Shown here: positions 18,010 through 22,800 of the stretch, piece by piece
How the letters are laid out: each line of letters opens with the position of its first letter
Numbering within the stretch: the stretch's first letter is position 1
Virus record (IMG/VR): IMGVR_UViG_3300014720_000001
Location: 1 to 64,000 of that record
Direction: 5' to 3' (one strand)
Length of the DNA stretch: 64,000 bases
Translations under genes and position numbers: made by a program
The notes under the pieces: generated by a model
What the model saw: the letters and a program-made list of their open reading frames with translations, nothing else
Database searches by the model: none
What the model was told of the DNA's origin: nothing

Positions 18010-21000
18010 TTAGTTATCTAATATGGCCCGAATGGTCGCGCGTAAATTTGTGTTTGTGTTCAATTGCGAGATCAACTCGTTTAAAAACGCAGCTGATTTA
18101 ACAATTTCAGCAACGTTAAGCGTCACGGCACCATTGATGCTTGTGTTGTTTGCCGTGATAGTTCCGCTGCCGAGCGCCGTCGGTGTAAATGTAATTATAC
18201 CGCCAGCGGGTATTACTCCGGTTGCGCCTTGTAATCCGGTAGCGCCTGTTGCGCCCGTGTTTCCGCAGGGCCCGGTTGCGCCAACTGGACCACTCGGGCC
18301 TGTTGCGCCGTTCGAGCCTATGGCGCCTGTAGCCCCGCGTGGGCCTGTTGCGCCGCCGGAGCCGGCTTGTCCGGTCGCGCCAGTTGCGCCGCGAGGGCCC
18401 TGCGCGCCCTGCGGACCTTGCGGCCCCATAGGCCCAACAACGCCTGTTGCGCCGGTTGGACCTGCTTGCCCTGTTTGGCCGGCGACACCAGCAGGGCCGG
18501 CTGGGCCAACTGGGCCGGTCACTCCGGTCGCGCCGCGATCGCCCTTTGCGCCTTGAGCGCCCTGCGCGCCCTGCGGACCTGCGGGTCCGACTGAACCCTG
18601 CAAGCCGGATGGGCCAGTAAGTCCACGCGGGCCTGTTGCGCCGGCGGTACCTGTTGCACCTTGCGGACCAGTCGCGCCTGTGGGCCCACGCGGGCCGGTC
18701 GAGCCAACAACGCCTGTTGCCCCCTGCGGACCTGCAGCTCCGTTTTGTCCAGCGGGCCCGGCTGGGCCGGTTGCACCAGTGGCGCCTGTTACGCCGGTTG
18801 CGCCAAATTGTCCGGTAGGGCCGGTCATGCCCTTGGCGCCTGTAGCGCCTGTGGGGCCTGTAATTCCTGTCGGGCCGCGGGCGCCTGACGGGCCGGTAAA
18901 ACCGCGGTCTCCCTTATCGCCCTTTGCGCCGACCGGACCCGTAGGGCCCATCGGACCAGTTACACCGGTAACACCCACCGGACCTTGCGGGCCTGTTTGT
19001 CCCGGGTCGCCTGTGCAACCTGTGGGACCCATGTCGCCTTGCGGGCCGATGATACTTAAACCGGGTAAGCCCTGAAGCCCCTGATCTCCCTTGTCGCCTT
19101 TCTCGCCCTTGTCGCCTTTGTCGCCTTTTAAACCCTGATCACCTTGCATGCCTTGCATGCCCATGAACCCAGCTGGACCGCGGGGACCGGGAACACCTTG
19201 AATTCCTTGATCGCCCTTGTCTCCTTTATCGCCCTTGTCGCCTTTTTCACCGGTTTCGCCGGTGTCGCCCGTGTCGCCTTTGTCGCCTTTTTCGCCGGCG
19301 TCTCCGGTCGGACCAGCGGGTCCTTCGGGGCCGGTTGGTCCTTGTTCGCACGAGCCGCCGCCGCCACCGCCGCCGCTACCACCACCGCTACTAGACGTGG
19401 GGCATTCGGTTGTATTGAGTTCGATGTTGACCGTGAGGTGTCCGCTTTCAACGTCAACTTCAATACTGCCTGAACCGACTCCCGACGGCGTGATATTAAC
19501 GGTGCCGCTTGTGATACCTTTCGGAATATATGCGTAACCGCCGACCTGATACGCGCACTTTGCGGTTTCAGTTATTTCGACGTAGATTTCTGGTGTGCCG
19601 CCACCATAGGGGCGCATTTCCAAACTGCTGCCGGTGAACTCAGGATAACACGCCGCCGGCACACCGATGTTGATATAGAGATCGTATATGCAGACGCCGG
19701 GTTCGTCGCCGGTTGTTCCGCCAACTTGAGACGGCGTAACTTGACCCGTGCCGTATGGGTAATCAGACTCTGTAACATCAACATTAAGAGTGATTTGCGG
19801 GCACGGCGGCGGTGGGCATTTTGGAATCCAGATGTACGGCGTTAATTTGAATTCGCACAGATCTAGTTGCTCGACGAGAATTTCTGCGCGCGGTTCAATG
19901 CCGCACCCAGTCAGCGCGATCCCTTCGCCGCCTTGTATTTTTGGAATACACGGCTTCGGTAACCCGAGGTACAGCGGCAAAACAACGTCGCACGTGTATC
20001 CGGGATCGAAGTTAAACAGCGGGCCGCCCGCGAACGCGTACGGATCTGCTTGCGGCGGAAGCACGCGCAAATCGACGACCATTGAAACGGTCGTACAGGG
20101 CGGGCGCGGAATCTGAATAAACAACTCTATATCGATCTCGTAGCAACACACAGGCGGATTATTTGTGCCACGTTTTTCGTCGTACTCGGCGCACTTCTGA
20201 ATGTCGAACTTAATTTTTTGTGGGACATCGTAGCCCACTTCCGACTGCAGGTTTTTGACGCGAAATTGCGTGCACGGCGGGCGCGGAGTTGGAATATCGA
20301 TATGGATGTCAAACAAAAAGTTGCATGAACCCGGATCGTTGCATGTTGCCGGCGTCGCAACAGCAATCAGGTTAAAGAAGCTCGGTGTGTTGCTGAGGCG
20401 ACCAGCCGGGCCGTCTTGATAATGGCTGTTGACAGTCAAAAACCGCGAGAGTGTTGGACAGCGCGGCCGGGGAACTGGAACAACAATTTCTATTTCAATA
20501 TCAAAATCGCAGCGCTCTGGTTGGTCGCAGCCGCTCGCCGGCGTCACAACTTTAGTAATTTCAAAGCGCGACTGCCCAGCTACGCAATCCGTACCGGCAA
20601 ATCCAGTCTTGACCGTAAACAACTTTTTCGCGATATCGATACATGGCGGCGGCGGAATAGGTACGACAATTTCCAGATCGATGTCAAAATCGCATTGATC
20701 TGGCGTGTCGCAGTTACCCGGAGTAATACGCGGTGTAATTTCAAAGCGATTAGATTTTCCTTGCACGCATGTCGAATCGCTGAGTCCCGTCGATACTTCA
20801 AACGTATTGATATTAATGCTGGGGCATGGCGGCTTTGGAATTGGCACATCGATGGTCAGCTCGATGTTGAATTCGCACTGGTCAGGATTGTTGCAGTCGC
20901 CCGGAATACGCGTTGACGTAATTTCAAATTTAGAACCACCCGACGACGAGCAGGTAATGTCGTCATAATGAACTTTGACGTCGAACGCTGGAGAGTTAAT

Positions 21001-22800
21001 AACTGGGCACGGCGTTCTCGGAATTGGTACGACGATTTCAAGATCTACATTGAAATCGCACTGGCCCGGGTTGTTGCAGTCGCCGGGTGTGTGGCTCGTG
21101 CTGATCTCAAACTTCGAGCCTGATTGCACGCACGGCGAATCGCTAAAGCCTGTTTTGACGTCAAATGTGCGCGCGCGTATGAGCGGGCAGGGCGTGCGCG
21201 GAATTGGCACGTCAATGGTGAGTTCGATGTCAAACTCGCACTGGCCCGGGTTGTTGCAGTCGCCGGGTGTGTGTTTTGTCGTGACCGCAAACTTCGACCC
21301 GGTGAGGCCGCAGCTTTGATCGCGATATGCGGTGTTTACCGTTAATACTGGCGAATTGATAATCGGGCACGGTGTACGCGGAATTGGGATGTTGATTTCT
21401 AACTCAACGTCAAATGTGCACTGGTCCGGGCTGTCGCAGTCGCCGGGGGTGTGATTTGGCGTGATCAAAAACTTCGACGGCGATTCGGCGCAATTGATTT
21501 GATCGTTGTAGCCGGTTGTGACGCTAAACGTTGGCGAATTAATGACCGGGCAGGGCGTACGTGGAATCGGAATAACGATCTCTAACTCGACGTCAAACTC
21601 GCACTGGCCCGGGTTGTTGCAGTCGCCGGGTGTGTGCTTTGTTTTGATTTCAAACTTGTTGTCACCGGTAATGCAAGTACCGGTAGACGAGTCCGCATAA
21701 CCAGATGTGACGCTGAACGTAGGCGAATTGATGATGGGGCACGGCGTACGCGGGATGGGTACGACGATTTCCAGCTCGACATTGAATTCGCACTGGTCCG
21801 GATTGTTGCAGTCGCCCGGAGTGTGGTTTGTGGTGATCTCAAACCGATTGCTGCCGGTAATACAGTTACCGTCGTTGTACCCAGACACGACACTAAACGA
21901 CGCGGCGTTAATTGCCGGGCACGGCGTACGCGGAATGGGTACAACAATTTCAAGATCAACGTCAAACTCACAGCGCCCCGGGTCGTTGCAGTCGCCGGCA
22001 GCGTAGCTTGGCGTGATGCTGAAAAAGTTTTGTTTGTTCAGCAGGCAGTTGGCGTCAGAGAAACCGCTATCAACTGAGAACGTGTTGAGGTTAATAACCG
22101 GGCAGGGCGTACGCGGAATCGGGATTGCGATCTCAAGCTCAACTTCAAAACGACACTGATCGGCAGTGTCGCAATCGCCGGTTGTAATGACGGGGTTGAT
22201 TGCAAATTTGTTTTGCTTATTTACCATGCACGGCGCGTCGGAATATCCGGAGTAGACGCCGAAATCTGTGATTACAATTTGCGGGCACGGTGTTTTGGGC
22301 ACCGGAATTTGAAGATCCAGATCGATGACAAATTCGCATTGGTCAGGCGTGTTACAGTCACCCGGCGTGATAATCGGCGTGATACGAATTTCGCTGCGGG
22401 GTGTAATGCAGTCCTGATAGCCGACCTCCAAACCAAACTCGCCCGCGGTAATAGCGGGGCAGGGCGTCCGCGGAATTGGGACATTGATATCGAGCGTGAC
22501 GTCGTAGCGGCACGGATCGACGTCGCGGCGTTCGATTTTCAGTTCGTTTTTCGCCGGCGGGCAGGCGTCAACGTCGTCGCCGCTACTTTCAAAACTGACA
22601 TCGATGCTCGTGAGCGCCGAGAACTCCGGGCATAACGGCCCGACCTCGGTCGGCGGTTCTCTCGGAATAATCGGCGTCTGGCAGCCGTAGATCGGCGGCG
22701 GCAGGGGCGCGATATCGCACACCGACGAAATGAAATCAAAGTCAGCCTTCGGAACTGCTTCGATCGGACACTGCGAATCTTTGAAAAGATTTTCAGACAT
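18010..22800 (-). CDS. 1596-aa fibre/appendage protein: Cys-rich 60-aa repeats plus collagen domain
   Basis: Repeated [10 protein letters not shown]...C...[21 protein letters not shown] units, a Gly/Ser linker, about 125 G-X-Y triplets and a short C-terminal domain. Confidence 0.9.
18211..19341 (-). repeat. collagen G-X-Y coding repeat
   Basis: 9-nt periodic GC-rich sequence, about 377 codons, with one imperfection (GLSIIG). Confidence 0.9.
20100..22490 (-). repeat. tandem ~180-bp coding repeats (60-aa, four-Cys units)
   Basis: GTTGCAGTCGCCGG-like and CACGGCGTACGCGG-like elements recur every 180-186 bp, in frame in the 1596-aa ORF. Confidence 0.9.

Follow-up and report, generated by a model that had tools for sequence, protein, structure and literature searches.

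We analysed the first 64,000 nucleotides (hereafter, the window) of IMG/VR virus record IMGVR_UViG_3300014720_000001, a 204,621-bp sequence that has direct terminal repeats and is rated complete. Positions 18010 to 22800 of the window form, on the minus strand, a single open frame of 1596 codons without an internal stop. The encoded protein (P0001, 1596 aa) contains a long array of ~60-residue units with a regular pattern of four cysteines, which is followed by collagen. That this gene and its family are real is beyond reasonable doubt. The explanation that we favour overall, with moderate confidence, is that the product is a long tail fibre in which the units build an intertwined trimeric rod, laced by two sets of cysteine pairs, and in which the collagen is the distal part.

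Organization of the fibre protein

The units were delimited by splitting the protein at the recurring motif PIPRxPCP and then scanning it with a unit profile. The scan detected 13 consecutive full units at residues 107-894 (window 20119-22482, minus strand, as are all parts of the gene given below), each with a domain E-value between 4e-20 and 6e-33. Units 1 to 11 (residues 107-773) have exactly four cysteines at fixed positions, which we named C1 (position 8 of the unit), C2 (in a loop near position 27), C3 (position 46) and C4 (position 52). C2 is absent from unit 12 and the canonical C3 from unit 13. Reading of the sequence added less regular units on both sides of these 13. Residues 895-1093 (19522-20118) contain four degenerate units that keep an IPxPxC start, with C1, and a last strand of the type C-x-aromatic-x-aliphatic, with C4; one of them is still matched by the profile (residues 992-1046, E 9e-4). 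The array is preceded by two proto-units, residues 1-53 and 54-106, the second of which has C1, C2 and C4 and is without C3. The total is therefore ~19 units (13 canonical, two proto-units and four degenerate ones). The tandem duplication is still visible in the DNA, with periods of 180 and 189 nt.

The two proto-units coincide with the N-terminal region of the protein (residues 1-106, 22483-22800), which begins with the motif NLFKDSxCP and is presumably the attachment end. At its other end, the array is closed by a cap (residues 1094-1135, 19396-19521) with the ending LNTTxCP; the ending TLNTTxC is common to many family members. A Gly/Ser linker (residues 1136-1150, 19351-19395) leads into the collagen region (residues 1151-1530, 18211-19350), in which runs of 32 and 93 G-X-Y triplets, 125 in total, are separated by one two-residue break, and which has conserved single cysteines at 1262 and 1512. 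This region exceeds the threshold of Pfam family PF01391 by a wide margin (E 1.9e-52, 175.3 bits versus a cut-off of 27.2) and, judging by its sequence class, would form a three-chain helix. The C-terminal 66 residues (18013-18210) consist of a copy of the cap motif and a terminal helix motif, LxTNxxLRxxIR. The cap motif, ~35 residues long (IPxG...TP...GSG.I...G..T.N), hence brackets the collagen, at 19420-19527 and 18112-18213, and its two copies are 38% identical (E 1e-4). The terminal helix motif (18013-18090), of the type LxTNxxLRxAI, ends most family members (P0002-P0097), with or without collagen.

A preliminary description, made from the sequence alone, had counted about 12 well-conserved and four to five degenerate units, followed by a Gly/Ser linker and about 125 triplets, and had proposed a long fibre that includes the collagen. 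All of this agrees with the layout given here, where 11 of the 13 profile-significant units have four cysteines.

The four-cysteine unit and its family

The same description had not recognised the repeat as a named family, and in our searches too it belonged to none. Collagen was the only Pfam match at E<=1, and no match to the repeat was obtained. A sequence profile search of the PDB with the unit profile gave no chain at E<=10, and the PHROG matches of the fibre were limited to its collagen part (residues ~1093-1566). Among 50,697 GenBank phage records there was no DNA match, and tblastn with residues 1-1150 returned nothing. An ESM Atlas feature search yielded no usable match. The unit could not be assigned to any of the named beta-sandwich or Ig-like repeats that we considered (fn3, Big, HYR_4C PF23237, PKD, Rib and G5); an HYR_4C row in the ESM Atlas had a template modelling (TM) score of 0.33 only. 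We found nothing in the literature on a cysteine-rich collagen tail fibre.

Relatives were detected among metagenomic proteins. A 72-unit profile (alignment A2), read against 1.84 billion representative proteins, detected 75 proteins at E<=1e-3, of which 61 were at E<=1e-30, and nearly all of them contain multiple units. A word-index search gave 69 relatives of comparable length, many of them on contigs of 180-213 kb, and every one of these relatives that has a source name is labelled "hypothetical protein". Family members contain between 3 and 25 units, and most, not all, continue into collagen. Seven related IMG/VR loci share the architecture and the neighbouring genes. Since units and cysteines are retained in orthologues that are 37-65% identical, the repeat is not a chance pattern. 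Hence, the repeat module is real and conserved, and its distribution is restricted to a single group of large (~200-kb) phages, for which metagenomes are the only source. A scan of 185,579 prokaryotic species genomes turned up no relative and consequently offers no prophage or host clue.

Two orthologues carry additional domains. A 2519-aa orthologue, 37% identical (L009:7797-15389 (+), L010:7224-14813 (+)), has insertions of ~135 and ~195 residues located exactly in the C2 loop of two units, from which it follows that the C2 loop faces outward. The second of these insertions is very rich in cysteines, and in the same protein a large non-collagen domain splits the collagen. In orthologue P0005 (L014:6001-11892 (+)), a pectate-lyase-like domain (PF12708, residues 1321-1517, E 6e-18) is located inside the collagen region; this tailspike-type domain fits a distal end directed at the host surface.

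Conservation and covariation of the cysteines

The profile alignment comprised 943 full units of 113 family proteins. C1 and C4 are almost invariant (99.8% and 99.5%), and C3 and C2 are present in 89% and ~79% of the units, respectively. C1 is missing in two units only, and C4 is missing from both of these too. The loss of C2 is linked to the loss of C3 in the following unit: at the junctions between units i and i+1, C2(i) and C3(i+1) were both lost in 50 cases and both present in 720, with 4 and 15 mismatches (table [[50,4],[15,720]]; odds ratio 600). The corresponding odds ratio is 11 for C2 and C3 within one unit, and 0.6 for C2(i) and C3(i-1). A pairing of C2 with C3 within the unit, which had been our initial guess, was dropped on this comparison. 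Because kinship inflates raw counts, the junctions were also clustered at 50% identity, which left 24 classes with both cysteines lost, 3+8 mismatched classes and 174 with both present.

Several irregularities follow the same C2(i)-C3(i+1) rule. A doubled cysteine in the C2 loop is often accompanied by a doubled cysteine in the C3 loop of the next unit (11 junctions). The first unit of an array tends to be without C3, as seen in residues 54-106 of the window protein and in the first unit of P0015. The lack of C2 in unit 12 of the window protein together with the lack of C3 in unit 13 fits as well. The cysteines are thus conserved and paired in homologues, and their paired gain and loss, together with the coevolution described below, is what would be expected of a disulfide-stapled repeat. 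The two pairs, C1/C4 and C2(i)/C3(i+1), are very probably spatial neighbours.

Coevolution and structure prediction

Mean-field direct-coupling analysis was performed on 788 two-unit windows (effective number 696). Both cysteine pairs are among the strongest couplings: 27C(i)-46C(i+1) has rank 4 and 8C-52C has rank 6, and a second junction pair, 24D(i)-5R(i+1), has rank 3. Other couplings reveal how the strands are paired. Strand 1 is parallel to strand 3 (9-54, 10-53, 11-56, 12-55 and 14-57, with 8-52 as register pair) and antiparallel to strand 2 (16-35 and 18-33), and strands 2 and 3 form a hairpin (40-53/55, 34-59 and 41/44-50). The majority of the couplings replicate in both units of the two-unit window. 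As each of the three strands is laddered to both others, they cannot form a single flat sheet, and the simplest solution is closure in an oligomer.

An AlphaFold prediction of a single chain of three units had a predicted local distance difference test score (pLDDT) of 69.5 when made with a shallow alignment of 56 rows. With alignment A4, consisting of 150 diverse three-unit windows from 72 proteins, the pLDDT was 87.5 and the predicted TM score (pTM) 0.50. In the A4 model, the unit is all-beta, with three long strands at approximately positions 10-22, 33-41 and 50-63 and no helix. The beta modules of the preliminary description are therefore retained, whereas the beta-sandwich that it had proposed is not, given the three strands per unit, the coevolution and the trimer model presented below. 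Comparison of the A4 model with the PDB gave no significant match, either with Foldseek (best E 0.013, TM <= 0.19) or with VIA wide (48,161 chains, best Z 2.9), and the best match in BFVD (E 0.002, TM 0.19) was not significant either. With the model of pLDDT 69.5, the ESM Atlas gave TM <= 0.39, and the other fold searches were empty. The top structural rows, which are insignificant, were tandem Rib domains and the G5-E rods of staphylococcal adhesins. A missing structural match is no proof of a new fold, as a single chain taken from an intertwined trimer is a hard query.

Collagen implies three chains, and we therefore made a three-copy prediction of units 4 to 6 with its own alignment. The interface score ipSAE was 0.71 (runs 0.72, 0.71 and 0.61), whereas the highest-scoring of three controls had 0.01; agreement between runs was at least 77% of the contacts, and the partner pLDDT was at least 71. 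Three sets of contacts have the lowest expected error. In the first, model positions 57, 59, 61 and 63, located in the linker and at the aliphatic end of strand 3, each touch their own counterparts across chains and would form a core on the axis of threefold symmetry. In the second, model residues 69-72 are placed against residues 113-118 of the next chain (70-115, 71-118 and 72-117), which corresponds to the strand 1/strand 3 ladder and makes C1 a neighbour of C4 in the adjoining chain. In the third, model residues 32-34 are placed against residues 16-18 of another chain (34-16 and 32-18), which corresponds to the strand 1/strand 2 ladder. The low-error interchain contacts of the trimer are thus the pairs found by coevolution, which was computed independently. 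The model supports binding between the chains, without demonstrating it, and a nine-stranded trimeric barrel per unit would fit both the model and the coevolution. We are fairly confident that the units are intertwined as a trimer and are the slices of one rod. On whether the C1-C4 pair is interchain, as it is in the model, we consider the chances evenly balanced.

Genomic position of the fibre gene

The minus strand carries nearly all genes from ~64 kb down to 15 kb of the window. Among them are a tail-sheath-like gene (49220-52447 (-); phrog_2839, E 6e-10, and phrog_279, E 7e-7) and a Baseplate_J-like gene (33150-34898 (-); PF04865, E 7e-11), which is transcribed in the same direction as the fibre gene and lies ~10 kb upstream of it. 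The fibre gene is the downstream end of this co-directional sheath-baseplate block. In contractile-tailed phages, tail-fibre genes are usually located downstream of the baseplate genes. The fibre gene has such a location, in a tail/baseplate module and downstream of baseplate wedge genes, and the synteny of the locus is retained in orthologous loci. Family members also combine a conserved attachment end with a variable, modular distal end: the N-terminal start motif is common to orthologues down to 37% overall identity, and the number of units (3-25) and the presence of collagen vary. Its position at the downstream end of the baseplate block makes a tail fibre the likeliest identity of the protein, and we consider this assignment likely.

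The source is an uncultivated contractile-tailed jumbo phage (a myophage) of 204.6 kb. The large terminase (TerL) gene, at 1110-3035 of the window, encodes a protein that is at most 30% identical to that of any GenBank phage, and the Baseplate_J protein has no match among cultured phages.

Weighing of alternative explanations

The preliminary description had offered disulfides or metal as the stabilising element of the units, and of these the data favour disulfides. It is reasonably likely, judging from the cysteine pattern, that the mature particle contains two disulfides per chain per unit, and the likeliest route to them would be oxidation after lysis. C2 of unit i-1 and C1, C3 and C4 of unit i could instead bind zinc or iron together, in which case there would be no disulfides. 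In favour of such a site, the strand map places all four cysteines near one junction level, the cytoplasm in which phage proteins fold is reducing, and searches of the genome turned up no oxidase. There is also the example of T4 gp12 and gp37, trimeric phage fibres in which His sites hold metal ions on the axis. However, the four ligands of a structural Cys4 site would be lost as one set, whereas C2 and C3 were lost as a pair in the 50 junctions (24 independent classes) while C1 and C4 stayed, and extra cysteines appear two by two. This paired loss and doubling argues for two separate pairs and not for one site with four ligands. Couplings were found for 27-46 and 8-52 and none across the pairs, the units contain no CxxC or CxxH spacings, and there is no other conserved ligand-like residue (His41 is present in only 24% of the units). 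Metal binding is accordingly improbable.

The intertwining of the chains can be questioned in its turn. If the units were independent, monomeric small beta domains, three strings of them would hang from the collagen trimer next to one another, forming a multivalent, flexible adhesin. In favour of this, the prediction of a single chain already has a high confidence (pLDDT 87.5), and the top structural rows, insignificant as they are, were monomeric tandem adhesin rods of the Ig-like, Rib or G5 kind. However, three strands alone cannot bury a core, and a single flat sheet of three strands could not accommodate the ladders that coevolution reveals between strand 1 and each of the other two strands. 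In addition, the three-copy model reproduces these ladders between chains with a score far above that of the controls, and the pTM of the single chain is only 0.50. We thus give little credence to a string of independent beads. The fibre might also belong elsewhere: to the head or neck, as a whisker, or outside the virion altogether, with its gene merely adjoining the baseplate genes. Collagen-like head fibres exist in other viruses, no recognised family is encoded between Baseplate_J and the fibre gene, and the tail-fibre PHROG matches stem from the collagen part only. Opposed to this are the place of the gene at the end of the co-directional block, an N-terminus that is conserved while length and C-terminal parts vary, as in tail fibres, and the orthologue with a tailspike-type pectate-lyase domain. 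Such a different location is, in our opinion, unlikely.

Some observations weigh against an intertwined, disulfide-laced tail fibre. The assignment to the tail is based on gene order alone, and the eight genes between Baseplate_J and the fibre gene match no Pfam family and give one weak PHROG match, of unknown function. Coevolution cannot separate intra-chain from inter-chain contacts. As for the three-copy score, the calibration on proteins of solved structure, in which 20 of 30 same-chain pairs and 1 of 23 single chains attained the mark, used two copies and other alignments, so that these counts are only rough, and the score is the model's own confidence. The C2(i)/C3(i+1) rule is broken in 11 junction classes. 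Finally, no DsbA-like oxidase was found in the phage genome, and the sole ORF of the phage for a thioredoxin/glutaredoxin-like protein is a 124-aa open frame (genome 106579-106827 (+)). An Erv1 search gave no signal in any control genome and says nothing either way.

Proposed architecture of the fibre

In the architecture that we propose for the tail fibre, three chains would assemble in parallel, and the proximal two thirds would be a rod of ~19 stacked slices. To each slice, every chain would contribute three long beta strands, so that a closed barrel of nine strands would surround the threefold axis. Strands 2 and 3 would form their hairpin within one chain, and strand 1 would be exchanged, lying between the hairpins of the two other chains, the long C2 loop making the crossing from chain to chain. 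Strands 1 and 3, which run parallel, would bring C1 and C4 opposite each other at the base of the slice; the model makes this an interchain contact, by which the three chains would be joined in a ring. Successive slices would be stapled by a pair formed of C2, from the top loop of slice i, and C3, from the basal hairpin loop of slice i+1. The cysteine pairs would become disulfides once the virion meets oxidising surroundings, and would stiffen and protect a very thin rod.

The fibre would be attached to the tail through its N-terminus, and the rod would be followed by the Gly/Ser hinge, the collagen triple helix, and the small C-terminal cap with the helix motif, which probably nucleates trimerisation or docks a partner. 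The units had originally been pictured on a collagen stalk. This order is probably reversed: the protein starts with the conserved N-terminus and the beta array and ends with the collagen and the variable parts, and in most phage fibres the C-terminal end is the distal end. At a rise of 0.286 nm per residue for collagen, the 125 triplets would measure ~107 nm. The rod would add 65-80 nm if a slice is 3.5-4.3 nm tall, which gives an estimated total fibre length of roughly 170-190 nm.

A more far-reaching version, which we put forward as speculative, is that each slice is closed by three interchain C1-C4 disulfides and tied to the next by C2-C3, giving a continuous covalent ladder of ~19 rungs with a new fold. 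This ladder would be oxidised only after lysis and could be reducible at the host surface, in which case the stiffness or the release of the fibre would be redox-responsive. For phage Milano, a redox response has been proposed for tail contraction (PMC10811340).

Neighbouring genes

Directly downstream of the fibre gene, positions 17043-18008 (-) encode a 321-aa collagen protein (P0114) that has two features in common with the fibre, the GPCGN collagen end and the terminal helix motif. A small collagen gene follows the fibre gene in the orthologous loci too. The 321-aa protein may be a co-assembling partner of the fibre or a second, short fibre. Further downstream, two small proteins (15536-16345 (-) and 16353-16625 (-)) contain an fn3 domain, and in orthologous loci a Big_1 domain is present at the position of the 90-aa protein; these small proteins may be further surface-exposed fibre accessories. 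Three proteins encoded upstream of the fibre (576, 536 and 313 aa; 24489-28778 (-)) have a raised cysteine content of 2.8-3.8%. Only the 576-aa protein has a family match, a weak one to a PHROG of unknown function, and the three could be fibre-associated parts that also use cysteine links.

A gene located between those of the sheath and the baseplate (39618-44282 (-)), where the AT skew is strongly negative, encodes a 1554-aa protein without any cysteine or family match, which may be the tape measure. In the baseplate block, a 280-aa protein (35826-36668 (-)) matches the PHROG "RNA polymerase sigma factor" (phrog_351, E 4e-10) and a helix-turn-helix family. A 472-aa protein (4647-6065 (-)) has a T5orf172/MUG113 domain at its C-terminal end.

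Discussion

The nearest published concept is gp31 of Agrobacterium phage Milano, the trimeric short tail fibre of a contractile-tailed phage, whose slender middle consists of bead-like beta domains of ~40 residues (PMC10811340). Each of these domains contains a cysteine pair listed among the virion disulfides (Cys84-Cys102 and Cys127-Cys144), and their folds were called novel by the authors (PMC10811340). The preliminary remark that so many cysteines are unusual for a virion protein is fair, yet there is this precedent (PMC10811340). The differences are considerable. Milano gp31 has two beads, each made of three beta-hairpins and a short helix, versus ~19 three-strand units here, and it has no collagen; the unit described here has four cysteines and a staple between units. 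The whole tail of Milano is cross-linked, whereas here the excess of cysteine is confined to the fibre protein. Indeed, a genome-wide excess as in Milano was considered and rejected, since the cysteine content is 6.0% in the non-collagen part of the fibre versus 1.2% in the rest of the structural block. Nor did the unit qualify as a bead of the gp31 type: the PDB profile search was empty at E<=10 and no Milano fibre chain was among the fold matches, in a database in which gp31 residues 127-300 are not deposited.

The C-terminal third of the protein resembles collagen-like phage tail fibres and minor tail proteins (PHROGs 6320, 5073, 819, 1806 and 30509; PF01391), as it is a typical bacterial or phage G-X-Y helix, rich in Pro at X and in Thr at Y. 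The similarity is limited to residues ~1135-1566, and nothing in these families matches residues 1-1100.

In the triple beta-spiral of adenovirus, in T4 gp12, gp34 and gp37, and in triple beta-helices, short tandem repeats contributed by three parallel chains are wound together, giving a slender, rigid rod that is hydrophobic along its axis. The principle would be alike here, although no structural match to such shafts was obtained in the Foldseek (PDB) and VIA searches. The unit described here is longer (60 aa, with three strands of 9-14 residues), and where the viral shafts use His-metal sites or purely non-covalent packing, it has regular cysteine pairs instead. The G5-E repeats of SasG/Aap and the Rib domains are likewise elongated tandem beta repeats with long strands and came top in the structural searches. 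Their scores were nonetheless at noise level (Z 2.7-2.9, root-mean-square deviation 6-10 A), and they are monomeric cell-wall rods without the cysteine pattern.

Phage fibres decide host range and are models for the folding of thin trimeric rods. The repeat would be a new shaft module without a Pfam, PHROG or PDB counterpart, and the A2 family profile would let annotators label ~75 clusters of proteins that are now called hypothetical. Its regular cross-link pattern, readable from sequence over 3 to 25 units, allows a direct test of whether a protein that is synthesised in the bacterial cytoplasm uses disulfides. As an element for protein design, it may offer a covalently stapled rod of tunable length, fused to collagen of the bacterial type. 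For the virus itself, the module may represent a novel route to a fibre that is both stiff and covalently stapled.

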